From Amphiscolops sp. MND2022 (taxonomy: Eukaryota): 64,000 nucleotides of DNA. The DNA lies in assembly GCA_964187785.1 (NCBI GenBank), contig OZ076416.1, positions 24,118,001 through 24,182,000 of the forward strand. The letters are read 5' to 3'. The notes under the pieces are model-generated. The model ran no database searches. It was given only the letters and a program-made list of their open reading frames with translations, and was not told the origin of the DNA. A program made the translations under genes and the position numbers. Positions 2,490 through 63,700 of this stretch are shown one piece after another. Within the stretch, counting starts at the first letter, position 1. The number at the start of each line of letters is the position of its first letter.

Positions 2490-2695
2490 CACTTTCATCA
2501 ATCTTTCTTCTCGGTCTTTCGACAAAAGCGAAAGCCACCTTTTAGTACAAACAAGTAGGCTAGAACAAACGATCTCAGGTGTAATCAACCTGGAACGCCA
2601 AGAAGACGACAATAAATACATCAAGCATCAAACAGGATTTAAAGATGGAATGAGCAAATAGAGATAATAACTACAACAAAGTAACGTACAAAGTG

Positions 2696-6168: not shown

Positions 6169-6349
6169 TTCACTGAGCGCCATCCATGTATTCTGAATGT
6201 GTTGAACAGCCGTTTGCTGCAACAAAGACTCAATTTCATTAGTTAAAAAGGGCTATAACTGAATTGAAAGTGAGACATTGATTGTATGACTCGGTTTTCC
6301 TCTTCTAAGTAAGGTCCCTCCACCTTCTATACATATTAGATTTTATATT

Positions 6350-39035: not shown

Positions 39036-42000
39036 GATCAAAATTAACAATAAACTGATGGCCTTAAAATTAATTTTTTTTTGCTTCAGTGATTTTCAGT
39101 CCTTTTTACGGATTGAAATACTTGGCGATCAAATCTGCGTTCGTTAAAACAGTTGAAAACTTTTGTCGTCAGTGAATAAAATATATCTGTTGAAACTTCG
39201 GACAAACAAGTGTTGAATCTTGCGTCATAATAAGGTTGCGCAAAGTTCTGAAATCAATGATTCGCCAAAAATAGTTTTGATGGCACTTCCGAACTAATAC
39301 TTCAAGTCAAATTTGTCACTGGGAGATTTTAAATTAGAAAATGATGGAAGAAACTAATTTAGAACAAGTTGCGAATACAATCTGAAGGGTTGTGTTTGGG
39401 TAAATACCAAAGTTTCAAACAAGATTGTATGTTCTGGGAGTATTTTCTCAATATTCAACGTCAAGTAAAGCTAAGAGAGTACAAAATCAAACAAATACTA
39501 AGCTGATAAACCAATATCAGGGCAAATGACCGCCAAAAGTCATGTATGTGAAAGCTTCTATTCCAGATCATGATATTAAAATGACCTCATCAAGTGTGAC
39601 CTTCAGGTGGCATGTAAAGCTATAGCTCGGTCAGTATGTAAACCTATTGACTTAGAGATGATAAAAAGTTAAGTGGTCCCTATGTAAATGGAAGAAAGGT
39701 CTAGGGGTTACAAAAAATTACAAAAAATTGAATACGATTCGTAACGTCCAGCAGCTTTGTGACAGAACAGTTTCCAGAAACAGAAATTTACCAAAACTTC
39801 GAAGTACCGCACAAAAGAAAAATGGCCGACCTGGCAGGTACTTCGAATCAGTCTTGAAGAAGAAAAACCAAAAAACAAGCCCAACCCGAGATGTTGGGTT
39901 GAGAGACATTGATGTTTCCTCAGCCTGTTACAACGTATTTGCAGCTTTTGCAGGTATTTGGTGATGTTTGACCTAGTAGGTCCCCATTTTAGATCTTGTT
40001 CCGATAATACAATGTATTTCAGCTAGTTCAATTACCTGAAATACATTGTATTATCGGAACAAGATCTAAAATGAGGATGCAAGTTGCTGTTTCTGGACCT
40101 CGGAAGCATGCATGCAGGAAGTCGCACGAACCATAGGAACCGTTTTTACAGGCTTGTGGGGCGTGTTCGGACTTTGAGAGTGTCGGCACGTCGCCTACGA
40201 GCTCTAACATGAGGAGCCCCCTCGACGAGGAGCCCCCTAAACGTCCCCATAGGAGACAATTTTGGGATCAAAAACTAGTGTCTAGCGTTGTAGTAAGACA
40301 ATGGTCTTCTGTCTAAGCAACCTAGGCACTGTCCCCGTTCTAGGTTGTCCGCTGATAGCTTGACGTTACACTTCAAGAACAAATTGCAAGAGCTTTTGAA
40401 ATTCATCATAAAGTCACTATAGTCATCAGTGACGTTGCTTAGCAGCTGACTTTTTCTTATCGGTGCTTTTCCCTGATTGAAGTTGCTTGATTTCTTTGCA
40501 GGTGACCAAGCAAATTTTTAATGATTTTATAAATCTCATGAAATTTTCCAAGCATTACAAATTCCTTGTTTCAATTGAAATTTGTCAAACTGCCTAAAAG
40601 ATGCATCCTAGGATCAGCGGCAAATTGGAGCCACGAAGTTTTGAAGCTTTCATTAGGAAGCGGTTCTATTTTTAAAAGCAACTGCTGAGACTTTGAGGCC
40701 ATTTTTTAACAAATCAACTTCTGTCACATTCTGACTGTAAAGTATCGTCATCTTCAGCGTGCAATTTGACGAATGATGAATACACAGTCGGGGAAAAATG
40801 GGGAGTCAATTACACTGCAAAATGAAGAACTTCTCTACAGTGTCAATAACAGTCCCTAAAAAGTACTGGTCCTCTGCTGTAACTGATAATTTCGTGTTTC
40901 CGTTTGGGTTCGGGTGAACAAAACTTTCTACAATTTTTCGCTTTTTTCGCTTGGTTTGAATGCAATCTTGGGTTTTCCAATCAAAGCAGCTGGTGTAGCT
41001 CCCCTTGTGGTGACAAACACGAGCGAGTTGAAGGAACTTCTTTCAACTTACACTATTTTTTGTTCGTACTTCGACAGTTTCTGAGATTTTTGCCACATAC
41101 AGGTTTCTTTTATGGGTTCAAGCATTGGAAATTTTTACGTCAAAGATCATACGGTTTAATTTAAATGAATCTAGTGAATTGGAATCGGTTGGCGCTTTCC
41201 ATGCCATAAGAGCCCCAGTCTTGCAGTGATTTCGAAAAATGCAAAAAGTAAAAAGTGCAAAAGAGCAACAAAGTACTAACTACCAGTAATTTTTTTTCGG
41301 AAAACTCTTCAGTCAGTCGTAATAAGACTGACTAAAAACATCAGAGAAATTGAGAAAGCAAAAATGATAGCAAGATGTGTTTTGCCAGTGCAAAATATAT
41401 TCCAAGAAGACATACATTCAAAGATATTCCTTCATGTATGTCGAAAAGACTAAATATGTAACGGTAACCTAGCAGAGCACGCTGAAACCACCGGGAAAAT
41501 ATAGTATAGTCCAGAGCTAGAAGAAACTGATCAAATGAGGCTCCTTACCGGGTTTTTAGGAGCTTTTTTAGTCGTCTTTTTATTGTTCATTTTGATTTAT
41601 TTTGGTTTGCAAGCCTGAACAGATTCTTTAGTCGCGTTTATAACACTTTCGGCGACTTGGTACTACGTGTTCATCAAAATTGATAAAAGTAAATCATGAG
41701 GTCCAGAAAAAAAAGCAGATGAATTTTTCTCGACGAACCGGATATTACAGATGAAAGGAACATTAGAAACCATTGTGACATGGAGCCAGCGAAAAATTAT
41801 GAAAAACGCACTTTCCCGGACGGAATTCTGGAATTCTGGCATCGGAACGTGAAAAGGTATATTTTTGGCAGTTTTTGCACTTCTTTTAACGCTTTTTCCA
41901 TGCCTCACAATATGAAAATTTGCAGAAGTACACATGTGTTGACAGACCATGTATTTCTATGCATGCTCCATGCATTGTCCACGTGAATTCCCAACATGAT

Positions 42001-42824
42001 CCATGTACATGGCCATGCTGTTTGTCACATAGAATCGCATGGTCCATGCATGGGATTTAAAACAAAACCGCATGCATGACAAAACAGCTGAATTGGTTCC
42101 GAATAAAGTCTTACAAAACTATCGGAGATAAGAATGACAGAATAATAGCTCTCCTGTCGATGGAATCTAGTCTGGAAGATACTTGCGGACTCTCGAAAGT
42201 AATTTTCAGAACCTGTGCTCGTTCAAAATCTAACCAAATTCAGTTGTTCATTTTTCCACTTCATCGACACCATATTTTAAAGAAAATTCAAATAAACTCG
42301 AATTATAACATGTGGAATTATTTGGAATGAAATTTAAATACAGTAAGAAATTGATCTAAAATCATTCTGATTGCTAAAATCATTGGAAAATGATCTTTAA
42401 CCCTGGAAAACGATCTAAAATTCATGAAACATGATTTGATAAAGTCACCAAGAAGAAGATCAATAAGGTGAAAGCTTTGAAAAAGACCAGTTCACAAGAT
42501 ATAAGATATAAATGTTAGTTCGATTTCGAGGTCCTCCTCAAAAATCAGATCTGAACCTCAAAAAATTTTTTTCAGTGCTAGCAGGCTGACTAAAACAGAC
42601 ATAACTTCGATTAGATCGATTTTGGGGTTGCATGTTTACGTTCAACTCGTTAACCGTTTGAAATTTCCTAATTAGTTAACGATCATTAACCATTCAGCCG
42701 CAAATGCACGCTATCATTCAGGAAGTGCTGTAGAAAACTACATAAAATTGTCATGTTGAGTCACGTTGAATTTAGATATATTTCATTCTTTTCATTAGCG
42801 AAGTGAACGATAACATTTCGAATA

Positions 42825-43655
42825 CCCAGGTTTTCGATCTTTGCGAATCTGTGCAGATCTGCAGGATTTTTCTGCAGGGTTCTGCAAAGATCGTTGCACT
42901 GAATCTTATAGATCCATACAGATCTGCAAGATCTTTACAGAAGTGTGCAGATTTTCTTAAAAGATTTTTTGCAGAAATATGTTTTTCTGCAACTTCTAAG
43001 GAACCAATGACCGCATTTTTGGACTTCTTTAGCTACTTCATCAACTACTTTGCTGACCAACGCTCAGTCAGTTGATATTCTCGATCACTCGAAAATCTCG
43101 GAAGAAAAATTTGTCCCCATCACGGTAGTTATGGTGACTGGAGAATGAGCCGTATTGGTTATACACCGTAATTTATCCATTTCACTTGAACTTTCCAGAT
43201 GTGGTTGTTGAACTTTGAGAAGCTCGTTTGCCTCATTGACTTCGTTTTGACGTGTGAAATTTGACATGTGGCAATCTTCTGGGTTGGTAGATGTGTTGAT
43301 AAAGTGTTGTTGTTGTAATATTTCGGGAACATGGTTTGTTGGAGTAATTTTAATAATTTCTGGTAACTCGGAATACGTTATAGTAAAATTCTGGTCTTTG
43401 TTTGGATCTGTAAAGATCTGTAAAGATCTGCAAAACTCTACAGTTCTGTACAGATTGCAGCAGAAAAATGTTTCGACATTTTGACATAAATGAGACTACT
43501 CTCGAGTTTTAAACATTTTTATTATTCGTTTGAAATCGCTGTTTGGTTTTTAATGTGTTTCTGATAAAGTCATTTTTTTCGAATCTGCACATATCTGCAA
43601 AGATCTGCCAAAATCCTGCAGATCTGCACAGATTCGCAAACATCGAAAACCTGGG
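42825..43655. mobile_element. MITE-like element (831 bp) with long TIRs starting CCCAGG, flanked by TA
   Basis: CCCAGGTTTTCGATCTTTGCGAATCTGTGCAGATCTGCAGGATTTT at 42825 is the reverse complement (1 mismatch) of the sequence ending at 43655. TA lies on both sides (42823-24, 43656-57), and AGATCT motifs recur subterminally. Confidence 0.85.
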
Positions 43656-44700
43656 TAATTTATAAAATATCATAAATTAAATTTTTTCAAATATTTTTCA
43701 TATTAGAAAAGAAAAAAAATCATGTGAATTCCCTTTGAGATGCTGTATAAAAACATAAAAACAAGACATATGTTGGTTAATAAAAAATGAATTTGTATCC
43801 AATAGGGGACATAACAATAAAGAATTCTTAAATTAGGCCGAAGCCTATTACATTACCTAACAGTTTGCTCTCACGGATTTTTAATGAAACGGAATTCTCT
43901 CAAACTGAGTTTTCCATAAACTTTGGTGTCTCTGTCATCAAGGAACAGTTCATAAAAACATTCTTTATGATATAATTATGTTTGTATGTTGAGTCCGGAG
44001 GCTTAGCGTGGTATGAGCTCCAAAGTTTGCACCCACGCTTTATTAGACAATTTTCGAGAATGGAAGTTCGATGTCTGACTTGACAATCCAATTTAGGAGT
44101 TCTTTTATTTTCAGATAAATTGAAAGTAGAGAGTGACACGGTTTTGAATGCAGGGAGTGAATTTTGCGACAGTCTCCAGAAATAACAGAAAAGTTTGAAG
44201 TCCAGAAAGTATCGGATCAGTAATACACGATATTGAACTTAGAGATCGCGCGATGAGTCGAGTTTCCGTCGATTGAATGATGATGATGTAGCGGAGCTGA
44301 ACGAGTTGGTTACAGAGAATCTTAAGCAAAACAACTTTTTAACAGAGAAAAAAAGAATGTCCCTGGAATTCGAGACAATTTTACGATGGTCCCCACCACT
44401 ACGTTCGTTCTCCATTCTAAACTACCCAATATAGAAGCGGAAAAGCAAATTGTACTAAAAATTTTATGAAGCTATAAAGTGAAATATTTTTTCCGTCGAA
44501 AATGATCATAGCATGGCGAGTATATTTGGTCAACCTGGGTTGTCAAAGTAAACCGATCGTTAGATGAAAAGATAAAATATGACCTAGGGGACACATAACC
44601 ATATCCTGCTGTTATTTGTGAAAATTGACAAATGATAAATATAACCATGCTTTTGCTTCTTTATAATATTCAGAGAGCATAAATTTTGCAAAATTGTTTC

Positions 44701-45824: not shown

Positions 45825-46089
45825 ATGAACAACCTAATTGTTCAAATTTTATTCATTTCCATCTTTTCTTTTCCTACACTCAATGCCCTCAATATCCTGA
45901 TTGTTCTCCCCTGCTATGGAGGCCACTTTGGAGCTATGGTTACTATCCTGCAGCAGCTGTCACGTGACAATGACGTCACCGTTATTTCGACATCTCCCGT
46001 GTGTGATAAGAAACTAGAACCGATACGGAAACGAGCATCTTTCGAATTGATCAGAGAAGACATCATTTTGGGAGAGCTAGATTTGACTG
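45825..46089 (+). CDS. UDP-glycosyltransferase (UGT-2), exon 1
   Basis: MNNLIVQILF...LNILIVLPCYGGHFGAM...RASFELIREDIILGELDLT is colinear with the UGT-1 N-terminus. Homology stops at a phase-1 G|GTAGGG donor at 46089/46090. Confidence 0.9.
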
Positions 46090-46712
46090 GTAGGGTCATA
46101 GGTTTTGTTTACTTACAGCTGTGATAAGATAATGGAGCCCGTGCTGGGTAATTATAATTCGGACCCTATAGGCTTCGAACGCCTAATGATTTTGCGAATG
46201 ATAGACTTAATGCTTCTCGGACTTTTGTCTACAGTAGTGATATTATTAAAAGCAACAAAAGGCAATCTCAAAATATCGAATATCTCTAAAACAGCAGCGA
46301 TTTTTGAAAAATGATAAAAGTGGAAGTTTCTTAGATTTTTATCTAGTTTACAAATATGTTTGTTTGAAGATTATGCGATGAAAATTGTAGAAGTTACGAT
46401 AGGCCATTTTTAGCCAAATTTAGGCCAAAATTGACGTTTTTCTCACATTTGATCTACTTTTGCTCAAAATTTTTGAAACATTTTATGTTCAATTGACCCC
46501 CCTGATTTAACTGAAGCCCCTGATATGTTTTGATTGAGAAATTGAAGAAAATAAGCTGTAAAATTAGGCATTTTTGAAAAAACGTGTATTAAGATACGAT
46601 TTTGAAATATAACCACTTAAAAAAACAAGAAAGTACTATTTCAAATTACAACATTTTCGAAAAAAATAATACTGTTTGATTCAAATTGTTTGGGAGAATT
46701 TTTCTGTGAAAA

Positions 46713-49700
46713 TTTTAAAATATAAGAAGTCATAGCATGTTTCGAAGCTAGAAACAAGATTTTTGTTATGTATGAACAACTTCTCCAGTTAAAACAAGTC
46801 ACGCTTTTTGTATTTCAGCGGGAGATAATCATTAACTTCTGATGTTTGTTTTGTAAATCACTTTTCTGTTAACTTCTCTGAATACAGTTGAATTGAAACT
46901 AACAACTCTTCGTCTCACTCAGCCTCAAAAGTCAAGAGGTTATGCGGCCTTAACCAATCATCTGAAACAAAGGTTGCTGTCACTTTTCGATGAGAAGTCA
47001 GTTTTCGATGAGAAGTCACTTGAACACTGCGGCGAATGATGGCAAGCAGAAGCGAGAAGTAAGAAGTCAAGCAGAAAGAAGCAATCTTTTTTCCAATGAA
47101 CCACTACGCCATGCAGTCAGAAGTCAACTTTCAGAGATGAGAAGCAAGTAAACTTTTGAAAACTCAGACTCAAACTTTCTTGATGCTTTTGTAAATTTTC
47201 TTGCTGTTTTTCCTAGGCTGAGTAGAGTTGAGTTTGAAGTTGAGTGAGAGTATACATAGGTAAAAATTTGTTTTTGAGAAAACTTTTCGGAAGATTCAAA
47301 AAAAAGACTTCAGTGAAATTTAACTAGGCGTGACAAAAAAAAATCGTAGTGACAATTTTTCTGACAGACGTTTCGATAGCATTTCTTCGTTTTGGTTGAT
47401 TTCCAAAGTGCACGTCGCTATGCACTGCATAGCATGACGGGAAGTAAGAAATTTTCTGAGTTTAGTTTTTGCTTCAAAACGCCTGTCATTCGCGTTTTTT
47501 GTTTGTAAGTTGTTTTTTGCGACCCAGACAATCGCCCTTATATGTAAAACAATCGAAGCAACATTCTCACAAGGTCAAGGAGCACAAGGACAGGTTCACA
47601 AGGCCTTAGCGTTTTAAGTGTCTTCGTTAATTTACACAACTGAGATATAAGATGACTAACCGTACGGTACAGTCTAAGTTGGAAACGTTGATGTTTTCGG
47701 GAAAAGACGAGGATTTTGAATATTTTGCTGAACGTTTTGAAGCTCGGCTTCATTTATTGAAATTGAGAACTGTCCTTCTTGATCAGGAGAATTTGCCTGA
47801 AGAAACAGATGCGAATTTTGCTAGTGAGCAGAACAAGTTGAAAGAAAAACAGTTCGAAGTTTGGTGTGAACTGGTTCAATGTCTAGATAGAAAGTCATTG
47901 AGTTTAGTTAAAACAGCGAAACCTAACGGTACTCAGGCTTGGAAACTTTTGCAAGACTGTTTCAAACGTCGTGAACGTCCTCATATCCATCAACTTTTGA
48001 ATAAGTTAACGAACCTAAAAATGTACTCACAAGAAAGTATGCGTGATTATTTGATGAGAGCTGAAGAACTCCAGCTTAATCTAACCGACGTTGGAGAAAA
48101 CGTTAGAGATCAAATGCTATGTTCGGTAGTTCTAAAAGGTTTGCCGAACAGCTTTGCAAGTTTCGTAACTGTTTTCAAGTTTTCGCATGAAGCTAAAACC
48201 TTTGCAGATCTAAAACGAGATCTTTTGAATTTCGATAGTGATAGTTGCTGAGGTCAACCCGAACATGGAACAAGGTCACATTTCACTAAAGACGTGAAAT
48301 GTTTCAAGTGTGGTAAATTAGGCCACCGACAAAGTGAATGCAGAGCAAAAGTGTCTGTCATAGTGTGTTACGAATGTGGTGCAAAAGGCCACAAGGCAAA
48401 TGAGTGCCCCAAAACGAAAAAAAGTCGAAAACAGGAGCTCCGCGTGAGACGAGTCAAAACAAACGTTTTTACACGAAGCGAAATGAGAGTAATCTAACTG
48501 CTGAAAAACAAGGTTTCTCGTTTCATACTAGTCAAGTACATTCGACGTGTAAGATCGTAGATCTTTTAATAGACAGTGGCTGCACGAGTCACATGATAAA
48601 GGACGCTGAATTGTTCAGAGACTTGGACATTTCGAAAATGGGTAATGTTGAATGTGCGAACGGCACTGAATCTAGCATTGAAGGTCGAGGATCCGTTAGT
48701 TTCTTGGCAAAAGACAATCAAGGCCAAGATCAAATCTTGGAACTTGAAAAATCGTTGTACATTCCCCAATACCCAAAAAACTTAGTATCGATAAAAAAAA
48801 CTGAACGAACAAAATGCGAGCGTTCATTTTGATGCGAACCCTCGTATAGTTCAGGATGAAAGATGTGTTCCGTTAAAGTGCGAAAATAACTTGTTTTATC
48901 TACAAGTTGATTGTTTGCATGAGCAAAGCAATGCCGCAACTGCAAGTCTTCAACTATGGCATGAACGACTTGCTCACAATAACAAAATTGATGTTCGAAA
49001 CTTGGCAAAGGCTGTAGTCGATATGAACATAGTTGATGAAAGAAACGAACCTTGCGATGTGTGTAACACTGAAAAAGCTAAGCGGTTACCGATAAGCCGA
49101 AAAGATGCAACTAGAGCTAAAAAACCTTTAGACATAGTCCACGTAGATATATCGCCAGTAAACACAGTGTCGATAGATGAATTCAAGTACGCTCTAGGAC
49201 TCGTTGATAGCTTCAGCAGACTCGGTGCTGTTTATCTATTAAGAACAAAAACCGAAGTCGGAACGAAGCTTTTGAAGTTTATAGCTGAGCTTGGCAAACC
49301 TCGCAAGATTGTCACTGATAATGCTAAAGAGTTCAAGTTTGGAAAATTCGCTGACATTTGTTTACAGCAAGGAATTCATCAGGAGTTCACTTGCGAATAC
49401 ACTCCAGAACAAAACGGTAAAATAGAACGAGTTTGGGGAACCATCGGCGCGATGGCGAGGTGTCTGTTGAAAACAGCAGGCTTACCTGAAACTTTTTGTT
49501 CGTTTGCATACCGAGCAGCTTTCCACATTAAAAACCGGTGCCTTCACTCTGCTCATGGCATGACACCGTTCGAGAAGTTTTTTGACAAGACACCTGATTT
49601 GTCCCATTTTCGAGTTTTTGGACGTCAAGCATTCCTGTACTTAGAGAAACCAAAGCGAAAAAAACTTGAAAGTAGAGCTTTGGAAGGTTTTTTACTCGGC

Positions 49701-52700
49701 TATAGCAACAATTCTAAGTCATATCTGATCGGATTTTTCGAGGGCGCAGATTTATTACGAAAAGTAGCCGAAATGTAAATTTCAACGAGACTAGTTTTCC
49801 AGGAAAAACACTTTTCGCAAACAATGAAAGTAGCAGTGAATTTTTCTTCGAATTCAACGAAAGGGGGAGTGAAGTAGAGTTGCAAAACACGGAATCAGTC
49901 GCCGATACACACAACTTGATAAAAGATGTGAGTGAGTTGCCAAACGGTGATTTAGGCGGTGATCCAGAAACTTTGGTTAACGAAATTTCCGACGAGAGTC
50001 TAACACAAAATCAACCGCATAGTTCGACTGTGCATACTACGACTAGATACGGACGAAAAGTCAAGCCGCCCAACAGATACGCCCCAGGTACAAGCAGCAA
50101 CTTGTCTTACAAATTAGGTTCGTCTGAGTTCGATGAAATTGAAACGTTTGCATACCATAGCGATTATGTTGATCAAGAGTTACTGAAAAGCATTGAAGAA
50201 GCACTTTCTTCTCCAGAGTGGTATCGTGCGATGAAAGCGGAATACGACTCTTTACAGAAAAATGAAGTTTGGGACATTGTTGAAATGCCAGAAGGAAAAA
50301 ACCTCGTTACAGGTAAATGGCATTTTGCACTTAAGCGAAACAGTAAAGGAGAAATTATTAGGCACAAAGCAAGATACGTGGCTAGAGGATTTAAACAAAA
50401 ACGAGGTGTTGACTACGATCAAACATATAGTCCGACTGTCAAAATGGTAACACTTCGAGTTTTACTGAGTTCGGCAGTTCAAAACGAAATGAAGTTGAAA
50501 CAGTTAGACATAAAAACCGCTTACTTGAACGCAGGTATAGAAGAAGAAATTTTTGTTGATCAACCACCAGGATTCGTTACGAAAAATGCCAACGGCAAAA
50601 GCTATGTTTGTAGATTGAAAAAATCGTTTATGGATTGAAGCAGTCCGGTCGCAACTGGTTCAATACACTTAGAGATTTTTTGCTCAGCATTCAGTTCAAG
50701 CCGAGCAAAAGTGATCTTTGTTTGTTTTTGAGGGAACGAAAGGGTCATAAGGATTTTGTAGCAAGTTGGGTAGACGATTTAGTCTACTGTAGCGACGATT
50801 TTAATTCTTACGAAAAATTTGAGAAAGCACTGAGCACAAAGTTCTTGTTCAGTGAAGTTGATGACTTGAACTGATTCTTGGGAATGCAAATCAGACATGA
50901 AAAAAGTAGACTAGAAATTTCCCAAGAAAACTACATCGAAAAAGTACTTGAAAACTTTGGAATGAAAGATGCCAAAGGACTTTTTACGCCTGTTGCTGAA
51001 AAGCAAATTTGATAGTGCAATTAGTCGACTGCGAAGAGTCGGAATTTTACGGGAAACCAATCAATCTTTTTTCTGACTTACGCAAAAATGAAGAACGTGG
51101 ATCGCAAACCAAATCACAAACAGACAGGATTCAACGCCTAATATCCGCAATAAGTTTTATACAAATTTCAAACAAACACGAATGTAAACTAGATTAACAA
51201 TCAAATTCTCCTCTTGATATCAATAGTTTCATGAAATACGTGCGGAAAATGGTTCGTTCCAAACAATGTTTGATGTCAACTTGGGTTTCATTTCTTCGAT
51301 CACATCTATGCCCAGGTTAGCCCTCTCTGTACTATCACGCCTATTGCATCAATCATGGACCTCATTCTACGTTCGTACTGGACAATCGTACTACTGAATG
51401 CATGCTTTCTAAGATTTCGTTGACAGTAAATTGAAAGCGTGGCCACTATGTTGCTTATTCAGGTTATATTGAAAAAAAGTTTTATAGCACCTCCACTTTT
51501 TGCAAAAGCGTTTTTTGTGGCTTCGGATACAACATTATTATTTGATTATAAATCATGTAAGTAACTTGAAACTGCCCAAAATTCTAGGAAAGGAAAGGAA
51601 AATTTATTTGGCTGCATACACGAAAAAATACAGTTTCATCCCATGTTATTGAAGAAATTCTAAATTTACATCCAGCCAGGAGAGAGGATAAGCTTAAGCA
51701 GCTCTTCTAGCCTCTCCCTTTGAAATGAATAACATAAAGAGGAATTTTGCAAAAAAAATTGTTGTGTCAAGTTTCTGGTTTTCAAGGGTTTATCTTCCGG
51801 ATTGCAAAACAGACTGTTTTTTTTCGATATTCAGAAAAAAGTTTTATATAGGCGCCCAACAGATACGCCCCAGGTACAAGCAGCAACTTGTCTTACAAAT
51901 TAGGTTCGTCTGAGTTCGATGAAATTGAAACGTTTGCATACCATAGCGATTATGTTGATCAAGAGTTACTGAAAAGCATTGAAGAAGCACTTTCTTCTCC
52001 AGAGTGGTATCGTGCGATGAAAGCGGAATACGACTCTTTACAGAAAAATGAAGTTTGGGACATTGTTGAAATGCCAGAAGGAAAAAACCTCGTTACAGGT
52101 AAATGGCATTTTGCACTTAAGCGAAACAGTAAAGGAGAAATTATTAGGCACAAAGCAAGATACGTGGCTAGAGGATTTAAACAAAAACGAGGTGTTGACT
52201 ACGATCAAACATATAGTCCGACTGTCAAAATGGTAACACTTCGAGTTTTACTGAGTTCGGCAGTTCAAAACGAAATGAAGTTGAAACAGTTAGACATAAA
52301 AACCGCTTACTTGAACGCAGGTATAGAAGAAGAAATTTTTGTTGATCAACCACCAGGATTCGTTACGAAAAATGCCAACGGCAAAAGCTATGTTTGTAGA
52401 TTGAAAAAATCGTTTATGGATTGAAGCAGTCCGGTCGCAACTGGTTCAATACACTTAGAGATTTTTTGCTCAGCATTCAGTTCAAGCCGAGCAAAAGTGA
52501 TCTTTGTTTGTTTTTGAGGGAACGAAAGGGTCATAAGGATTTTGTAGCAAGTTGGGTAGACGATTTAGTCTACTGTAGCGACGATTTTAATTCTTACGAA
52601 AAATTTGAGAAAGCACTGAGCACAAAGTTCTTGTTCAGTGAAGTTGATGACTTGAACTGATTCTTGGGAATGCAAATCAGACATGAAAAAAGTAGACTAG

Positions 52701-53776
52701 AAATTTCCCAAGAAAACTACATCGAAAAAGTACTTGAAAACTTTGGAATGAAAGATGCCAAAGGACTTTTTACGCCTGTTGCTGAAAAGCAACAAATCAG
52801 TAGGTCGGACTGTCCTGACGAAGGCAGCCAAGAACAAGAGGAGATGAAAAATTGTAATTTTCGTGGAATGATTGGTTGTCTGAATTACTTAGCGAACACA
52901 ACAAGACCTGATATAACTTTCGCCGTCAGAGCTTTAAGTCGATACGTTCAAAATCCAGGCCGTAAACATTGGTTACAAGGAAAACACATTTTGAGGTATT
53001 TAAAGGCAACAAAGTGTAGGAAACTGACGTATAGAAAATCCAAAACACTCGCGCTCACAGTTTTCAGTGATGGCGACTGGGCAGGAAAGTTAGATGATAG
53101 GAGGTCCACCAGTGGTTTTTGCTTCTTTTTGAACTCAGAATCAGGAGCTATTAGTTGGAGTTCTAAGTTACAGACAACGGTGGCGACCTCGACAGCTGAG
53201 GCAGAAACAATGTCGTTATTCGCAGCATCTCAAGAACTTGAGTTTCTGCGGGGCCTAGCGAATGAGATCGGAATTGACACTGAAAAGCCTACTAAGGTAC
53301 ATGTAGACAATCAGGCTTGTATCGCCATAACTAAAAGTACAGTGAATGCTCAGAAAGTGAAGCATTTTGCAATTAAGTTGAGCTTCATTCAAGAAAAAAT
53401 AGAAATGCGACATTTGGATGTTGAGTTTTGTCCAACCAGTGAAATGATTGCCGACTTGCTAACTAAACCGTTGGCAAAAGTTAAGGTTGAAATGTTCAGC
53501 AAAAGACTCTCCGGAGAATGTAACTTGTAATCGAGCTCCGAAAAGGGGGAGTTTTAAAATATAAGAAGTCATAGCATGTTTCGAAGCTAGAAACAAGATT
53601 TTTGTTATGTATGAACAACTTCTCCAGTTAAAACAAGTCACGCTTTTTGTATTTCAGCGGGAGATAATCATTAACTTCTGATGTTTGTTTTGTAAATCAC
53701 TTTTCTGTTAACTTCTCTGAATACAGTTGAATTGAAACTAACAACTCTTCGTCTCACTCAGCCTCAAAAGTCAAGA
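46713..53776 (+). mobile_element. Ty1/copia LTR retrotransposon, complete but with disrupted gag-pol
   Basis: 225-bp LTRs (46713-46937, 53552-53776) with no difference seen by eye; 5-bp TSD GAAAA (46708-12, 53777-81); PPT AAAAGGGGGAG (53541-51); PBS-like GGTTATGCGGCC. Domains: gag with two CCHC knuckles, protease LIDSGCTSHM, LWHERLAH, integrase (HVDI...DSFSR...TDNAKEF...PEQNGKIER), RT (KARYVARGF, QLDIKTAYLNA, SWVDDL), RNase H (FSDGDWAG...IADLLTK). Order is PR-INT-RT-RH. Confidence 0.97.
51005..51854 (+). repeat. 850-bp copy of downstream flank 54632-55481 inserted inside the copia element
   Basis: Same sequence at offset 3627 (ORFs 51009/54636, 51725/55352). It sits between two copies of copia segment 50067-51006 / 51853-52792. 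Confidence 0.95.
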
Positions 53777-54273
53777 GAAAATTGTTTTGAAATCGAAAAA
53801 TTGTAAGTGGGTCAAAAATTTAAAAGAAAAACTGAAAAATGTTTTGGAAATCGCTCTCGACCAACGAAATGAGCGCGTGAGACGTTATGTAGCCAATGAA
53901 ATTTGTTTATTTGCTCTCTTTCCGCGTGCTTTGTTGCTTTTGATAATATCACTACTGTAGTTTGTGTTTATCTATTATTTTAAGTTTTACCACAAGTATA
54001 AACAAGTTTGTAAACAATGATTACTACATATAAAGTATTGGAAACTCGGTTGCTGTCTATATTAGGAGAACTTAGTCATCATTTACTTAGTGATTTTGTT
54101 CAAGATGCCCATCATTGACAAATTAAACTCGAAAGTTTTCAGCTTTCTGGTGTGTACATGCAAGGAGATATTCGCAAATCCGTGGTCATAAATTTAAAGC
54201 GAATCCTTCAAATGTACCGGCAATATTTCAGGAGAAACTGTTAATTCTCTTAGAAAATGTTGAGACCGGTTGG

Positions 54274-54607
54274 GCGACCATTCGTCCCGAGCGACTATTC
54301 GTCCTAACTTCAAAAAATTGACAATTCCTCCCAATCTTTTTGAAAGCGACAATTCGTTCCATTTGAAAAAAGGGTCAATTCGTCCCAGATTCTTCAATTG
54401 ATTAGCTAAATAACAGTCGTTTGAAGTCTGAATTAAAGAATTGAACAAATGAACTACTATTGGCAATTAAATTGCAGTTTTAAATATTTGGGCGAACTGT
54501 CGCCTTTTCAAAATGAGACGACTTGACGCTTGGGACGAATTGTTGCTTTTGGAATTTGGGATGAATTGTCGTTTGTGATGAATCGCCGCTTGGGACGAAT
54601 TGTCGCT
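54274..54607. mobile_element. Small MITE-like inverted-repeat element
   Basis: GCGACCATTCGTCCC-type motifs cluster on the left and the inverse GGGACGAATTGTCGC-type motifs on the right, several copies each. No clear TSD was identified. Confidence 0.55.
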
Positions 54608-55499
54608 TTACAGTAACGACTGAAAGCTTCAAAATTTGATAGTGCAATTAGTCGACTGCGAAGAGTCGGAATTTTACGGGAAACCAATCAATCTTTTTTC
54701 TGACTTACGCAAAAATGAAGAACGTGGATCGCAAACCAAATCACAAACAGACAGGATTCAACGCCTAATATCCGCAATAAGTTTTATACAAATTTCAAAC
54801 AAACACGAATGTAAACTAGATTAACAATCAAATTCTCCTCTTGATATCAATAGTTTCATGAAATACGTGCGGAAAATGGTTCGTTCCAAACAATGTTTGA
54901 TGTCAACTTGGGTTTCATTTCTTCGATCACATCTATGCCCAGGTTAGCCCTCTCTGTACTATCACGCCTATTGCATCAATCATGGACCTCATTCTACGTT
55001 CGTACTGGACAATCGTACTACTGAATGCATGCTTTCTAAGATTTCGTTGACAGTAAATTGAAAGCGTGGCCACTATGTTGCTTATTCAGGTTATATTGAA
55101 AAAAAGTTTTATAGCACCTCCACTTTTTGCAAAAGCGTTTTTTGTGGCTTCGGATACAACATTATTATTTGATTATAAATCATGTAAGTAACTTGAAACT
55201 GCCCAAAATTCTAGGAAAGGAAAGGAAAATTTATTTGGCTGCATACACGAAAAAATACAGTTTCATCCCATGTTATTGAAGAAATTCTAAATTTACATCC
55301 AGCCAGGAGAGAGGATAAGCTTAAGCAGCTCTTCTAGCCTCTCCCTTTGAAATGAATAACATAAAGAGGAATTTTGCAAAAAAAATTGTTGTGTCAAGTT
55401 TCTGGTTTTCAAGGGTTTATCTTCCGGATTGCAAAACAGACTGTTTTTTTTCGATATTCAGAAAAAAGTTTTATATAGGCGACTTCCTTTTACATACAG

Positions 55500-58400
55500 A
55501 TATTATATTTTCTTCAGATGTAACTGTGTTTGAGCTGTGCTCATTTTTGGTAAGTAAACTGGTATTAAATCATGGTTTTTCAACCAATTATATGCCTTTC
55601 TCAATTTATTATCCACTGATTTGGCTCGGGTAACTGTTCGACAATAATTCAAGGGATAGTAAGCTTTATTTCTTTCCTTCTCGTATTATATTGGCAAAGG
55701 TCGATCCCATCTTGAAAACAAAGTAGCGATTCTAATTTTAGCTGTTTGAATACTTCTCTGCGAACTTCCATAACGTATAGCTCAAATAACGTTAGTATAT
55801 TATTCTTCTCGCAAAGTTGTTCGATACTCTCATACTTATTTTTGCAGAATATCGCTCTCAAAATTCTCCTCGGTGCTCTTTCATTTTTTCAAATTCGTTT
55901 TGGCATCACTGCCATAGACAAGCAAACCATGTGTGATGATTGATTTAGCAAACGAGCTATAGAAGTTAAGAAGACATTTAACATATCTCTGACTTTGTAT
56001 ATCATACCACTGATTTTATTCAACTTTTTTGTAACATGTTCAATGTGATCAGGGAATGTGAGTTTACTGTCTAAGTAAACTCCCAAGAATTAACAGAATA
56101 CTTGCTTGGAAGCTTCTGTCCCACTAAAGTTAATTGGGTCCTATTACGGAAGGCAAAGTTCATAACCTCACATTTGGAAGTATCAAGCGACAATTTATTA
56201 TCCGAGAACCAATTGCTAATCTTGTCTAAATCGGGCTCTAGCAATGATTCCGTTTGTTTCCCTGATTTAAGGATTGAGGTTTCGTCAGCAAAAATAGCGA
56301 GCTTTTTGTTGTTTTGAGCGTACCTTGCTAAATTGTTGTTGTAAACAAGGAAAAGGAACGGGCCGAGAATAGATTCTAGAGGAACGCCGGTTGAAATCAA
56401 GTGATATTCTGTCTTCTCTTGATTGAATTCCATAAATTGCCATCTATTACTCAAGTAATCTTTATTCAATTCGTAAACTGGACCCCCACAATCCGTACGA
56501 GCGCAGTTTGTTCATCAGTACCGTATGAGTATGATCCAACGAATCGAATGCTTTCTTCAAGTCCAAAAAACAAGCTTTAACGGAGTTTTTTGTCCATTTC
56601 TACTCTCATGCAGTCTGTCACACTATAAATGGCATGCACATATGAGCGTTTAGCTCGGAATCCACAGTGCATCGGAGAGAATAGTTTACTGGTAATGAAA
56701 AAACTCACATTTTTAGAAAAGACAAGTTGTTCAAATATTTTACTTATTGGGCACAGTAAACTAAAAGTCGATAATTTTCTGAACAATCTTGCTCGCTTCT
56801 CTTGACTATTGGTACAACTTTTGCTACTTTAAGAAATTTTTGGAAAATTTTGCGTTTCTTTATACCTATTTAATGCCTTCTCGGTGTTTTTCTCAACTAT
56901 GGGGGATCAGCATTTTAACATTTCGTTGCTAATATCATCATGATCATAACTTTTTTGTTTTTTAAAGTTTGAATGGTCTTCGAGACTTCTATTTCATCAG
57001 TACATGATAAAACCATTGTTTTGAAATTGTTTGGAACTTTTATGGCTTCGTGGTGTAACGGGATTTTGTTGACAAGACAACCAATGGTTGCAAAATATTC
57101 ATTCAGTTTTTCAATATCTGGAACTTCAGGTTGCTTTTGGTTTTTTAATAGATGATTTTTCAAGTGTTTGTAAATAGTTCTGCTCGCTGGATTGGGTCCT
57201 AGTGTTTTGAGATTGCAGTCTCTCTTGGCATTTCGTATCAAATACGTAACCACATTACGTTGTTTTTTGTACTTTTTGTTATTGTTCTCACCAGGCGACT
57301 TTGTCGAAATTTGAAACAGTTGATTTCGTTTAGGCTTTCGTTGTTGTATTGGTTATCCAATCAGTAGGATTTTCTTCTGTTTTGATTTCTTTCACAGGTG
57401 CGAAACGCTCAATGCATTCTAGTTTACATCTTGAACTTTGTTCGGTATAATTCAAGTTATTTCCATCTAGCTTCATTAACCATTGTTCCAGGATGAACAG
57501 AAATTTTAGAGAATTGACACCTTTATTGTTTTTAGGTTCCTTGTTAAAATTTTGCTGTGACGTTTTGCTGTTACTTCTAGTTTGACATCGGGAATTTCGC
57601 CTAGAACTGTTTACTAATCACTCATTGTGGTTTATTCACTTTGTTGAACAGTCTGGTAAATAGTAATATACTGATTTAGACATGTTGATTATGTTGGTGT
57701 AACTCGTGTTGGCTCGCTGTTTTGCCTGCTGAAGGTGTAGGCTAAAAGTAAGTTTTCGTATTTGGTTCTATCTGCTGATTCATTTAAAGTATCGATGTTA
57801 AAGTCTCCGAAGATAATAGTGTCATGTTTGAAACTTCTAGAAAACTTAAGTAGCAGTTCGAATTCCGGAAGAAACATAGTGAGTTCTTTTGCTTGTGGTC
57901 TGTACACGAAGCAAAGTTTTCTAAAAGTTGAATTCCCGAAATCTAGGTCAATACTTGCACACTCGATGTCTGTGTCGTACTCAATTGACGAGTATTTCAA
58001 TGTTTAAGTGTTCTAGTTTTTCGCCGGTAGTTTTCAAGTGTTCAGTGTCCGATTTTGTTAGCCAGGTTTCCGTCAGTGCAATAATTTTTGGTTTATGAAA
58101 ATTTGATTCAAGCTCAACCACTAGCTCACCATGATGACATCGGAGTGTTTTGACAAAAACTTTTATGATTTAATTGGTTTTGCAATTTTGAAGCGAAAGA
58201 ATTTTATAGTTTGATACCGAGTTGTTTTGGAGTCAATAGTGGTTTTCAAGTTATTTGGTTTCGAAATTGCGTGCTTTGAAAATTGGCGTATTTGTATATG
58301 TTATCCTATTTTAGGACAATTGACCGCAAAACATTCTAATTGTTGTCCTCCGTTGATTATTCTGCAAATTTGTCACCTTGACGAGGAGCTTTCTGTTGCA

Positions 58401-59330
58401 TACACTCTTCCGCAGCTGAAGTACGTAGTCTCTTCAAGTCATTGTTGTTGTTACAATGTTTTTGGAGAGGAGTTATCGCAGATTTAGCGGGGGTTTTTTA
58501 TATTGCTTTTTCTCTAATGTCGTCAACAGCTCAGTTTTTGTGAAAACTTTCACCTTGCAAATGTAGGATGAAGCAATGAGACATTCTTGTTTTGCGTGTT
58601 CAAAAATATCTTTTTTGCAGCAAGGCAGTCGTTTTTTCATGAATATTGGTTTAGTGTTAACCTGTTGATTTTCCTGCAAGCCATGATTTTCTGCCATACA
58701 GCTCGTTTTTTTTCATCAAAGTACAAAAATTTGACGATGATGGCTGGAGGATACCTTTCATCACGTCTTCTACTGGGATCGTGACAGGCTTTAATATTGT
58801 AAGCATTCGTCGTAAAACCCAAATATCTTTCAAAAATGAGGCATACCAGCTCCCGTAGATGAAGTTTCATGTCCAAATGTGGCATGGTTTCAATAATAAT
58901 GCAGTCCTTGGACGTGTAAGTCTCCTGCTCGCTAACCCGTTGTTCCAGATCAAAAACTCTGTTGCGTATAGACATGATTTCAATTTCTTTTCTGCAATAA
59001 TTTTGGTAAATTGGTTCAGAACTGATGCACATTTTTTAAATTTTAAGTGCTTCAATAGCGGCTTTCAAACTGTCCATTTTCAATTCCAGCAAAGGATTAC
59101 GTAATACAACCAGCGCAAAGTTTGTCAGCATGCACACGACTGCATTCAACCGTTTCTCTTTGAACGCGTGAGTTCTGTGAATTCATATGACGTATTTCTT
59201 TAAATTTGCACATTTGGGAATAAGGCACGGTCACTTGCAATGATTCAGCATAGTGGACCACCTCTTCAAGTTCCTAAGTGTTGACATGTGAGTTCGTCTT
59301 CATCATGCAAATACCAATTTTTCTATTTGG
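55500..59330 (-). mobile_element. Decayed non-LTR retrotransposon (LINE, AP-endonuclease type; CR1/L2-like by motif style)
   Basis: Minus-strand RT remnants CFLDLKKAFDSLDH (~56531-56575), GVPLESILGPFLFLVY...IFADET and LGVYLDSKLTF; endonuclease remnants IIALTETWL (~58058-58088) and IIFGDFNID; ORF1-like piece 58637-59032. Multiple frameshifts; both ends approximate. Confidence 0.88.
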
Positions 59331-60775
59331 CCTAAATTAGGTTATTGTTTTTAATTCCTGACGTTTGCGTTGTGGACACTGTATTCGAATCGGTCATACG
59401 AGTGAAAATACGATTTTGCTACTACATCGTAGTACGAACCATGGCACGATCTCAGCTAAAATTTTGGGGTGCGCGTGCCGCGATTGTACAAAAACTTGGG
59501 TGGAGGGTTCAAGGCTTTACACAATCGACAAGTGTTGCAAAATATCATGTAGACATAATAACAAACGTGTTTCGTTTCAGTTACACCGTCAACGTTGTTT
59601 TAAAATGAAAATACTCAAATTGGATTCTTCAACGAAATGGAAATTTCATTTACATTGCATTTGTTGATCACGGTGGTGCCTAGAATCAATTTTCATAAAA
59701 TTAATAGATTTATATACTTTTTTCCGTTTATTCAGACATTCCTGATTTTCAACTTGAACAAAACGCCGTTCAACTTAAACCATCGACTTCTTAACCTCGA
59801 CAGTACACCGAGAAGTTGGAAAAGTGACAAAAAATAGCAAAAAATTTTTCAAAGCCTAATTTCTCCACGAATAATAGTAACAGCTCAAATCGGTTTTCTG
59901 CTCCTGAAAGCCTTCTACCTAAGCTTTCAAATGGACACTAGTTAGGCTGGGAGTTGGCGCCACTTTTGGGGTGAGAGCGCCAGTCCGGTGAGAGCACGGG
60001 CCTTTCAAATGACACTCGCACTTTTCGCTGAAGCTTCATTAAAAAAAATTCTATATGCGGTTTCAATGGTGGCAAACTGTTACTAGAGAGTGACAGTAAC
60101 TTAGCAAACAGTGGCTGTGTTATTGAGAAAAAGTTATCTTTCTGAAAAGTATTTTTTTGCGAATTTTCACTTTTTTCTAGTTACCTTTTTGCCGGTGGTT
60201 CGGAAAACAAACTATATTGACACAAGTAACAACTCGCCCCAGGTAGTCCAATAGATTGTTGATTAGAAAAACAAAACTTCGTGTTCCTATAAGCTTTTTG
60301 CGTATCGTAATATTTTATTGATTGTGAAAAAATCGCTGTCCTCATTTGGGTACAAAAGCACTGTCGAGGTTAAGTCAAAACGCTGTCCAATTTGAACAAA
60401 AAAAGTTTTCACGCCCAGCTGAATGAATGGAGTGAACAAATGCCATTCAATTTAAACAATCACATTTCATTTTGAAGACGCCTTTAAAAGATAGATCTGT
60501 GCAACGGTAAATCTGCTGTAAAAGTAGTTATTAAACAACAAACACACAATGAATAGCAGCGTTTTTCTTCTCAATGTTCAATAGAAGTCAGAAAACCCAA
60601 GATTGTAAACATTTCCTAGTACTTTGCCGGTTTGATTCTTTCATCTTAACATGTACCAAGTAAGTCGTGCAATAGAACTATAAGACTCGTTGTTCTAAGA
60701 TAGTTATGGACTGAGTCGCCCGCTATGCACCGGGATATTTTCTGCTTCAATTGGCTAACAATAGACGCTTAATAT

Positions 60776-60905
60776 CGAAAATTTACCTCCTCCCTAATAA
60801 AACGCAAATTACTTCGGATATAACGTTGAAAGTTCGGATATAGCGTGCTGAGACAAATGGGAGCGCTTGTTTTTGAACATCCGCCTCCTCCTTAGTAAAA
60901 CGCAA
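60776..60905 (+). repeat. ~92-bp repeat unit family, partial array (related copies at 63495-63700)
   Basis: Shared core TTCGGATATAGCGTGCTGAGACAAATGG and flanking ACTTCG-ATATAACGT motifs. Confidence 0.75.
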
Positions 60906-61625
60906 TATTAAATATAAAGAGTAGTAAAAAATAGAGATTTAGCAAAATTTGAATAAAAAACGCGACACAGATTATGATTTTTTCCTCTATACACAAATAA
61001 ATTTGTGGGGCGGAAAATAATAATTTGACTTTACAATTGAGACAATCCCCTTTCAGACGTTTTCCATTGAAAGAAGACTAGTCATAAAGAGGTGGTTCGA
61101 TCACCGAAACTTTTCTGATGACCACGTGGCCTGGAAAACTGTAACAAGGAATCTAGAACGTGAAAACTTTCAGTCAATATGCTTGAGAGAAGGGTTTGCC
61201 GAGCACCAAAGGCTCCCTTGGGATAATTTTTGGCACGCTTATATTCATGAGAGTTTCCTTAAAAAGCCCTGGGCATATTTTAGAATTTTTGCTCGTTTTG
61301 AGCCTTAAATGGGGCGCCAACTTCAGACATTGCCGACTTGTTACACCAAAAGTTTCAATTTTTCCAAGTCTACAAGTTTTGTATGACTTAACAGAAAAAC
61401 AAAAATTTAGGAAAAAATTAATGTTTTGCTCCTCGCGCTCGAAATTTATGACCTCTAGCGTTTGATTTTATATATCAAAAAATTGGGGGCTGAAGAAGTT
61501 CCCAAATAGGACATTTTCTCCTGAAAGTTATCTTGATCTCTGATAGTCAATCATGTATAAAACTCGCGTCCTAAAGTATAATTTAAAAGGTGCTGTGAGT
61601 TTCACTCACCGTCTCCTGTTGACAG

Positions 61626-62845
61626 GTCAATTGCAGTACTTGCTGGAAGTAGGTCAGCTCCATGTCGACTCTGCAAAGAACATGACAGCTTATTTCGACA
61701 CATTCTTCCGCGAAAACAAAGAAGAGTATGACGTGGTGATAGCCGATATATCAACTACTGGCGTTTTTCTTTCTGCTGAATCTTTCGACATCCCAATAAT
61801 CTTGTCAACCCCGGGGACGAGCGTTGCTGTTGAAAACATGGATATAAAACAAGAAGCTGCTTTTTGGGAGATGGTGATTTTCAAATTTGTATTCAATGGT
61901 TTCGGGAAATACATCGAAAAAAGTCGACTTGAACGAAAGTTACCGGAAGTAGTTTCTCAGTGGGATATAATAATTCCGTTTGAATACAATAGCCGTTTTC
62001 CCGCCATGATTTACACTTCGCCTCAATTTTACCCCAAACCGCATGAAACCATGGATTACATTTTCATCGGTGGTTTCCGAAATGACTCCGAAAATGTGGA
62101 AGTTCTGTCGGAACCTTTAACAGACTGGATAAATTTGGATTCTTTGGATGTTATATATGTTTCCATGGGAACCCTCATCAATTTGCCAGACCATCAAATC
62201 AAAGATTTCAGCGACGAAGTCCGAAAACAGAACCAGTATCGCGTGGTTTGGTCTCTCAGTGTTTCCATGCAAGAAACAGTGAACAACATGGGTCTAACTT
62301 CCGATTCGATGCTTTATTTCAGCAACTACCTTCCACAGTATACTCTTTTAGGTCATCCAAAGGTCAAATTGTTTGTGACTCATGGTGGACTTTTATCCTC
62401 AGTTGATGTCATAAAGCGGAAGAAGCCATCTGTTTGTATACCTCATCTGGGTGATCAGTTTTATAACTGTCGCAAAATGAAATCTCTAGGCATGTCTGAA
62501 ACAGTCTCATCATTCAGTTTCCCAGCAATCAACGAAACCATCATGGAAATTCGGCGCAACTACGCTAGTTATCTGTCTCAGGCCAAGGCTTACGCTGAGG
62601 ATCTTTCAAAATATGAAGACGTGAATAATCTTAATGCGTTTGTGCAGGAAATCACAGCTAGAAAATGTACGACTCTGGTGAAAGAGTTCAAATTTCAAAT
62701 TTATTCCAAGAAGTTTTTGATTGGATGGTTCTTTCTGAAGGCAGCAGCAGCGATTTTGGGGGTGGCTTTTTTGGTCCTCGTTTTCAAAGTTATGAAACGA
62801 ATTGCTTCAGCGGTGAACAGAAAAGAGAAAGCCAAAAAGTCGTAA
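61626..62845 (+). CDS. UDP-glycosyltransferase (UGT-2), exon 2
   Basis: GQLQYLLEVGQLHVDSAKNM...YLPQYTLLGHPKVKLFVTHGG...PHLGDQ..., followed by a transmembrane helix and a KAKKS tail. Colinear with UGT-1. The ORF-track N-terminus (61553-61625) is intronic and not homologous. Confidence 0.92.
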
Positions 62846-63494
62846 AAAAACTTCAAGAATTTCTCACGAAACATACGTGATTTATGATATGTCAACATTT
62901 TCGGACATTTTTGTTGCAATTTTATATTGTTGAAGCAACAACACCTCAAATGTACAATAAATTGATACAGTAGTTGATGAGTCAAGTCAATTTCAATACA
63001 TATTCGACTCGAGCGAAGAAGTTGTAACTGAGTTGTAACTATAACGTCAAGTTTTTCAACTCAAAAAGTTTTCTCAAAAAATTTACTTCTGACTTTCTTT
63101 AACTTGAACCTTACTACAATTAAGCGACTATCACTTTTCTAAATCCGAAAATTCTATTATAGACGTCTCTTTTTCCTAAGAAAGTGATAAAACCTTGCTG
63201 GTTTTGAAAACCAGCAAAAGTAGCAGCATGATGTATTTCGGTAGTGCGAGAATGAAAATATACATATCCGGTATAGGTATAGAAATGGAATTTTTCCGAA
63301 AAATATTGCTTTAGGAAATTTCATTCGAGACATTTTTGAATTCCAACGAGACAGAAGCGTCTTAAGTCGGCGCGCGCCACTTAAGGTTTAAAAACGCATT
63401 TTGAAAAAAATCCCTGGACTTTCTAATGAAAAACTTACAAAAAAGTGTCAAAACACCCAAAGGTTGCTTTTCGAGCTCGGAAAACGCTTCAAAA

Positions 63495-63700
63495 GTTCAG
63501 ATATAGCGTGCTGGGCCACACGGGAGCGCTTTCGAACATCGGTCTCCTTCTTAATAAATTGCAATTTACTTCGCATATAACGTTAGAAGTTCGGATATAG
63601 CGTGCTGAGACAAATGGAATCGCTTTTTTGAACCTCCACCTCGGTAAAATGCATTTTACTTCAGATGAAACGTCAAAAGCTCGGATATAGCGTGCTACGG
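63495..63700 (+). repeat. ~92-bp tandem repeat, about 2.5 diverged units
   Basis: GATATAGCGTGCT recurs at ~63500, ~63594 and ~63684. Confidence 0.8.

Follow-up and report, generated by a model that had tools for sequence, protein, structure and literature searches.

The stretch of DNA analysed here (the window; 64,000 nt) comes from Amphiscolops sp. MND2022 (assembly GCA_964187785.1, contig OZ076416.1, positions 24,118,001 to 24,182,000 of the forward strand) and lies on contig ctg185221 of ENA assembly ERZ25074608. It contains two UDP-glycosyltransferase genes, UGT-1 and UGT-2, arranged head to head (Table 1). UGT-1 is a single open reading frame (ORF). UGT-2 is predicted to be split by one very long intron that is filled with transposable elements and bracketed by a short direct repeat lying across the predicted splice sites.

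Both products match PF00201 and contain the signature motif and the catalytic-His region of the family. A protein collection search returned the UDP-glycosyltransferase family (PF00201), in which the acoel Convolutriloba macropyga provides the sole named members, described as "UGT4-like"; insect UGTs were the next named matches (E ~1e-8). The two exons of UGT-2 are equally conserved, with identities to paralogs of 59-67% (exon 1) and 56-57% (exon 2). Two further paralogs, P0002 and P0003, lie in tandem on another contig of ERZ25074608, are 57-59% identical to UGT-2 and are single ORFs. We take the contigs of this assembly to belong to one organism because repeats of the UGT-2 intron recur on the other contigs. 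Depth labels are uneven, with 155x for the window contig, 106-108x for most other UGT-bearing contigs and 86x for one.

Predicted splice sites of UGT-2 and the repeat across them

We found that a single pair of splice sites best restores the UGT-2 protein. All GT or GC donors near the junctions were combined with all AG acceptors, and each pair was scored by protein alignment to intronless relatives. The best pair in this unbiased scan removes 46090-61625 (+), a predicted GT-AG intron of 15,536 nt in phase 1 and the sole intron of the gene. Every other pair scored lower. The donor is G|GT (46089|46090; the bar marks the splice junction) and the acceptor is AG|G (61625|61626). The predicted join of 45825-46089 to 61626-62845 gives a coding sequence (CDS) of 1485 nt that encodes 494 amino acids (aa) with zero internal stops, and the product aligns without gaps to its intronless relatives (56-59% identity to paralogs). 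An earlier note on this DNA had said that splicing would leave one copy of the flanking repeat and restore the frame, and that UGT-1 has no intron and no gap at this site. Both statements agree with the intact CDS, with the pair picked by the scan and with the aligned 492-aa ORF of UGT-1.

The repeat spans both junctions. Copy 1 (46083-46091, +) reads TTGACTG|GT across the donor, where the exon ends at 46089, and copy 2 (61619-61627, +) reads TTGACAG|GT across the acceptor, where exon 2 starts at 61626. The earlier note had described an 8-bp duplication. That octamer pair can be read directly at both places, as TTGACTGG at 46083-46090 and as TTGACAGG (61619-61627) without its last base at 61619-61626. 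However, the T at 46091 equals the T at 61627, so the repeat extends one base further and matches at 8/9 positions, in register with the junctions and flanked by mismatches at both outer ends. Its length reads as 9 bp, or as 8 bp plus a chance match. The lone mismatch, at a third codon position, sets ACT (exonic copy) against ACA (intronic copy); both encode Thr, as had been noted. Directly 5' of copy 2 is a pyrimidine-rich tract. The flanks look like a target duplication. Splice sites inside the duplication had also been proposed; this holds for the acceptor AG, which copy 2 supplies, while the duplication would supply part or all of the donor.

To compare this repeat with chance, we took the length of the longest run of in-register matches over the junction, allowing one mismatch. 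The UGT-2 stretch of 9 has P = 0.0028 against random G|GT donors and pyrimidine-rich AG acceptors (~200 kb of genome), and P = 0.026 once the null is forced to AG|GT and AG|G. The earlier note had cautioned that acceptor consensus explains some of the match, and the G|GT and AG|G portion is indeed splice consensus. Taken alone, the UGT-2 repeat is suggestive and no more.

The UGT-2 intron is missing from its close relatives

In a maximum-likelihood tree, UGT-2, UGT-1, P0002 and P0003 form one clade (100/100) that is internally unresolved, and the sister of this clade is P0005, a gene of another assembly. UGT-1, P0002, P0003 and P0005 are all single uninterrupted ORFs. P0006, P0007, P0009, P0011 and P0012 are likewise full-length single ORFs, P0014 and P0022 read through the UGT-2 site uninterrupted, and the region around the site is gap-free in a 16-member alignment. 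One gain accounts for this distribution; an old intron kept in UGT-2 would have to have been lost many times elsewhere. Mapping on the family tree thus shows the predicted UGT-2 intron to be a lineage-specific gain, the derived state, as the earlier note had supposed.

Other derived introns of the family

We found three more introns with duplicated flanks in the UGT family, the kind of case that the earlier note had proposed to look for in the genome. Family introns were located by tblastn and the unbiased splice-pair scan, starting from truncated ORF calls. L005 intron 1, the L006 intron and L009 intron 1 (Table 1) are all in phase 1 and measure 0.4-1.1 kb. Across the four derived introns, the repeat lengths are 9, 9, 9 and 10, and the probability that the four arose jointly by chance is <1e-6 even under the strict null. 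The control is a single old intron (L005 intron 2; n=1). In 4/4 derived introns, GT and AG lie at the exact points that restore frame and alignment. Unselected insertions would rarely fit in this way; such a fit is to be expected only where spliceable insertions were retained. With the same insertion scar in four family introns, the process looks recurrent in this animal lineage.

The three sister introns have inverted-repeat, MITE-like bodies (MITE, miniature inverted-repeat transposable element). The L006 intron has 39-nt inverted repeats with GGTCAAAATACC subrepeats (end-to-end alignment score of 70 vs a mean of 16 for shuffled sequence). In L005 intron 1, an inverted repeat, GGGTGTAAATAT and GGGTGTGAATAT, matches at 11/12 positions and lies 4 and 7 nt from the ends, and the inverted repeat of L009 intron 1 is gapped, ~30 nt long and begins TTGCA. 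Alignment revealed no ends shared among the four derived introns, and their bodies are unrelated, indicating that they do not come from one element family.

Some other interruptions were seen in the family. L009 intron 2 has ambiguous borders, which can be read as GC-AG or as GT-AG plus extra codons, and is not counted here. P0014 and P0022 have an intron in common near the GGH region (L011, ~747-3024; L012, ~6380-7742). Its best frame-preserving donor is CAG|GAAAYTG, possibly a non-canonical GA donor; an alternative GT donor 6 nt downstream adds two codons. P0024, at L010 7468-8993 in assembly ERZ25878734, is a second version of P0006 that has 91-96% identity to it where the pieces align and is present as two adjacent ORFs. 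We rejected it as an intron-bearing gene: the split is a stop or frameshift, not an intron.

Insertion with target duplication as the probable origin of the UGT-2 intron

We propose that the UGT-2 intron arose when DNA inserted at an AG|GT site and duplicated its target, and that repeats swelled the intron later; we put the probability of this account at about 70%. We infer the mechanism, the order of events and the splicing itself. The starting point would have been an intronless UGT gene ancestral to UGT-2. A piece of DNA would have inserted at an AG|GT site within the Gly codon of ...DLT-G-QLQY..., and a staggered cut followed by fill-in would have duplicated 8-9 target bases (TTGACAGGT). 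The upstream copy would then have ended the exon and given the donor G|GT, the downstream copy would have given the acceptor AG, and the spliceosome would have removed the insert with one copy, bringing back the original frame. By analogy with the sister introns, a short DNA transposon of no recognisable family is the most likely insert. The new intron may then have served as a safe landing pad for a MITE, a copia element within that MITE, a long interspersed nuclear element (LINE) and dispersed repeats, reaching 15.5 kb. This account is supported by the two UGT-2 exons, which are intact and equally conserved while the intronic LINE is fragmented.

Several observations weigh against this proposal. 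When the first 138 nt of the UGT-2 intron were aligned to the reverse-complemented last 150 or 276 nt, and the first 40 to the last 40, no inverted repeats better than those of shuffled sequence emerged; the best match, ACTTACAGC with ACTCACAGC, lies 20 and 18 nt from the ends. Sensitive blastn of the first 138 and last 275 nt found no repeat family in the window and 11 loci (~200 kb). A search for UGT-2 orthologs with the exon 2 product returned nothing closer than 57% identity, and hence no empty site to inspect. The repeat is short, and its G|GT and AG|G portion is splice consensus. In the L005, L006 and L009 introns, linkers of 3-11 nt part the direct from the inverted repeats, which is not how textbook transposon ends look. 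One family member, L009, has an intron at the UGT-2 site, as descent from an ancestral intron would have it (see below). Finally, splicing of UGT-2 is a prediction from the sequence.

The nature of the founding insert

Members of the hAT superfamily make 8-bp target duplications and have short inverted ends of the YAGRG type. The earlier note had proposed a hAT-like founding insertion, and the UGT-2 repeat can indeed be read as 8 bp with one mismatch, in which case the insert starts TAGGG and its reverse-complemented end reads CAGGA. In contrast to hAT elements, whose terminal inverted repeats (TIRs) measure about 10-25 bp, the intron has no inverted repeat past YAGG. This agrees with the earlier remark that the two ends share YAGG alone and that no real TIR pair remains. 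Pfam scans of 20 intron ORFs gave copia domains and one LINE RVT_1 only, with no remnant of a hAT transposase or its dimerisation domain, and two Atlas look-ups gave LINE ORF1 and reverse transcriptase leads only. A hAT founding insert is therefore not supported: the intron ends share just YAGG, there is no hAT protein remnant among these ORFs, and the residual intron ends, which the earlier note had proposed to search, match no family in the ~200 kb covered. Nor is hAT singled out by the family as a whole, because repeat lengths of 9-10 do not point to 8 bp. We rejected a founding long terminal repeat (LTR) element, LINE or short interspersed nuclear element, since the intron lacks TG...CA ends and neither repeat copy adjoins an A- or T-rich tail.

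The hAT-like element that the earlier note had placed at 36175 is real, with a perfect duplication and matching ends (Table 1). It resembles the start of the UGT-2 intron over five bases only. The element (36175-37075) also contains subterminal repeat arrays of the CAATTC type and a small Cys-rich ORF (36495-36803).

Break repair and chance as alternatives

The same duplication might also arise by end-joining repair of a staggered double-strand break, in which filler DNA (possibly a transposon) is captured and fill-in of the overhangs makes the repeat. The varying repeat lengths (9, 9, 9 and 10) and the short linkers between direct and inverted repeats in the L005, L006 and L009 introns are as break repair would have it, as is the UGT-2 intron without inverted terminal repeats. 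In L006 and L009, moreover, the end of the inserted element has 4-8 bases in common with the target, which resembles microhomology. In Daphnia, exon-end repeats of 4-12 bp and parallel gains have been reported (PMC4202315). The UGT-2 intron has anonymous ends, and in the sister introns inverted-repeat elements are set 0-19 nt within the direct repeats. As transposition predicts, three of the four inserts consist of a complete inverted-repeat element and not of random filler, and the outermost ends of MITEs are often imperfect. The scar itself is identical and fits both routes equally, so that transposition and staggered-break repair cannot be told apart by it. Overall, we regard break repair as a somewhat unlikely origin of the UGT-2 intron.

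Another alternative is that the match between the UGT-2 flanks reflects chance plus splice consensus, and that the intron is old or of another origin and has no scar. The P value of up to 0.026 under the strictest null is consistent with this, as are ends that have neither an inverted repeat nor a family match. Very many windows were scanned, so some coincidences will be flagged. Arguing against chance, the UGT-2 intron is demonstrably derived, and the repeat is present in 4/4 derived family introns examined and missing from the one clearly older intron. We consider coincidence unlikely and continue to favor insertion with target duplication.

Contents of the 15.5-kb intron

The intron contains a MITE interrupted by a copia LTR retrotransposon, a decayed LINE and several dispersed repeats (Table 1). 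The copia element, the MITE and a LINE reverse-transcriptase fragment (56071-56469, -) had been described in the earlier note, and all were confirmed. Together with the dispersed repeats, they support its suggestion that nested transposons built up in the intron later. Inside the copia element, two direct copies of a 943-nt stretch of the reverse-transcriptase region (99.9% identical; 50064-52792) lie on either side of a foreign 850-nt segment (51005-51854). This duplication and the second copy of the 850-nt segment may reflect a recent rearrangement or template switch, or else an assembly artefact.

Table 1. Features of the window and derived or older introns of the UGT family. Positions with no locus given are those of the window.
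Feature	Position	Strand	Description
hAT-like non-autonomous element	36175-37075		Perfect 8-bp duplication CATGGGAT, ends CAGGGTTGTCA
UGT-1	37557-39035	-	Intronless single ORF (P0001), 492 aa, 56% identical to spliced UGT-2, PF00201
UGT-2 exon 1	45825-46089	+	88 codons + 1 base; conserved LPCYGGHFGAM catalytic-His region
MITE	46229-53960		31-nt TIRs, 30/31 matching; 5-bp flanking duplication TTTGT; ~660 nt without copia
copia LTR retrotransposon, nested in MITE	46713-53777	+	226-nt LTRs, 100% identical; Gag, beta-barrel domain, integrase, RVT_2
MITE-like repeat	54268-54608		GCGACAATTCGTCCCA-type units; same family fills start of L005 intron 2
850-nt segment	54632-55481	+	100% identical to 51005-51854 inside copia
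Decayed LINE, limits approximate	55500-59100	-	RVT_1 fragment 56071-56469, ORF1-like piece 58637-59032, ORF2 in at least 6 pieces
Dispersed repeat	59792-60368		85% identical to L008 5826-6364, another contig of the window's assembly
Short dispersed or tandem repeat	60766-60908		Also at 63492-63696 downstream of the gene, and in L006 and L008
End of multi-copy repeat	61254-61343		Several copies in L001, L004 and L008; last recognisable repeat 5' of the acceptor
UGT-2 exon 2	61626-62845 (through stop codon)	+	UDP-sugar signature motif, C-terminal membrane anchor; ORF P0004, PF00201
L005 intron 1	7593-8675 (L005, window's assembly)		12 nt downstream of UGT-2 site; missing from close L008 paralog; TTCAAG|GTG vs TTCAAG|GGG, stretch 9
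L005 intron 2	L005, window's assembly, further downstream		Older, common to L005, L007 and L008; no junction repeat, stretch 1
L006 intron	9536-10010 (L006, window's assembly)		~50 alignment columns (~45 codons) downstream of UGT-2 site; missing from sister P0007; ATGATCACAG| vs ATGATTACAG|, stretch 10
L009 intron 1	6048-6439 (L009, assembly ERZ25071359)		392 nt, at UGT-2 site; not in P0014 or P0022, its close paralogs; GCAAAG|GTC at either junction, 9/9

The state of the LINE bears on whether UGT-2 is a living gene. It has decayed into pieces while the 1485-nt CDS is flawless, which suggests that UGT-2 was kept under selection after the intron arose, provided that the LINE came in later than the intron, as we infer. 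At the defect density of the LINE, by a rough estimate, ~3 defects would be expected in the CDS, and none is seen.

If UGT-2 were dead, the 15.5 kb would be a pile of transposons in a pseudogene and would not be spliced out. The weak donor (GTAGGG) and the great length of the intron relative to the other derived introns of the family would fit such an explanation. However, both exons are open and as conserved as those of the paralogs, the catalytic-His region and signature motif are intact, GT and AG lie exactly at the frame-restoring points, and the LINE is in at least 6 pieces while the CDS is free of defects. A dead UGT-2 gene is, in our view, quite improbable.

Three other features of the window were seen outside the two UGT genes. 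Between UGT-1 and UGT-2 are a MITE (42823-43657) with 48-nt inverted ends (98% matching) and a near-perfect palindrome of 97 nt (39981-40077). The region 10000-34000 has a G+C content of ~50%, compared with 35-40% elsewhere, and contains 178-aa ORFs repeated at regular spacing.

An intron at the same site in L009

L009 intron 1, in a family member that belongs to another assembly and another clade, lies in the same alignment column as the UGT-2 intron, in a gap-free region. Both are in phase 1, in the Gly codon before Q-[LF]-x-Y. A same-position intron had been named in the earlier note as a sign that the UGT-2 intron is ancestral. Such an intron does exist, but the evidence favors parallel gain. 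The 3' end of each intron copies its own upstream exon (TTGACAG in UGT-2, GCAAAG in L009), and for this reason parallel insertion at a shared AG|GT site is, from the sequence comparison, the better reading than inheritance. The third gain 12 nt away in L005, in a position where the close L008 paralog has no intron, is a sign of a hot spot. In Daphnia, parallel gains that share a site or lie close together have been described as frequent (PMC4202315).

An ancestral intron common to UGT-2 and L009 and lost many times, e.g., by processed-copy conversion, would explain the match in column and phase in a gap-free region, but it is very unlikely: it would require at least 8 independent losses on the tree vs two gains, the nearest relatives have no intron in either assembly (UGT-1, P0002 and P0003; P0014 and P0022), the intron bodies are unrelated, inheritance leaves unexplained why the 3' ends copy their own upstream exons, and it sits poorly with the separate gain in L005.

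Comparison with known systems

In the proto-splice-site, or AGGT duplication, model, a classical intron is made from duplicated exon sequence alone. The UGT-2 target has AG|GT within the duplicated segment, so that both splice sites can come from the target as in this model, and three of the four gains are at AG|GT. Unlike in the model, there is foreign DNA between the two copies in UGT-2.

Introners recruit splice sites from target duplications and leave the length of the mRNA unchanged (Gozashti et al. 2022, 2025; PMC9860276, PMC12130899). They have been found in few animal groups, and acoels are mentioned in neither paper. The UGT-2 intron is similar in several ways. It is flanked by a putative target duplication in register with the predicted splice sites, which would come from the duplication or the insertion site; predicted splicing restores the mRNA at its original length; and the intron is absent from the close paralogs and the sister gene. 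The sister introns (L005, L006 and L009) have MITE-like inverted-repeat bodies, and the hosts of introners are mostly aquatic. In contrast, introners are defined as many near-identical introns per genome, whereas none of the four intron bodies had a second copy in the ~200 kb searched, and the UGT-2 intron has no recognisable element ends.

In Daphnia pulex, new introns attributed to the repair of staggered double-strand breaks carry a repeat of the exon end at their other end (Li et al. 2014; PMC4202315), and the UGT-2 junction repeat has this arrangement. The gains described here also resemble those of Daphnia in being lineage-specific and parallel, at the same or nearby sites. In contrast, the introns of Daphnia are polymorphic in populations and their inserts are short, whereas the introns here are fixed in the assembly, inverted-repeat elements make up the three sister inserts, and the UGT-2 intron reaches 15.5 kb.

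How new spliceosomal introns arise in animals has been documented in few lineages only, among them Daphnia, some tunicates, copepods and a sea urchin. The UGT family adds four apparently independent, datable gains with scars; two of them share one codon but belong to different assemblies, and another lies 12 nt away. We tentatively suggest, at somewhat less than even odds, that insertions are actively creating introns in this lineage, with short inverted-repeat elements that insert at AG|GT with 8-10-bp duplications and are spliced at once; two species would have been hit separately in the same codon, and an otherwise intronless family would have acquired four or more new introns. If this were true genome-wide, it would be introner-like activity in a bilaterian group without earlier reports, and the novelty would lie in the scale and the host lineage. 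Should splicing be confirmed and more cases be found, this would be a tractable animal system for intron gain, for hot sites and for the growth of an intron into a 15-kb transposon sink. The UGT-2 intron itself is a well-supported example of a known mechanism, introner-like or of the Daphnia type, and not of a new one.

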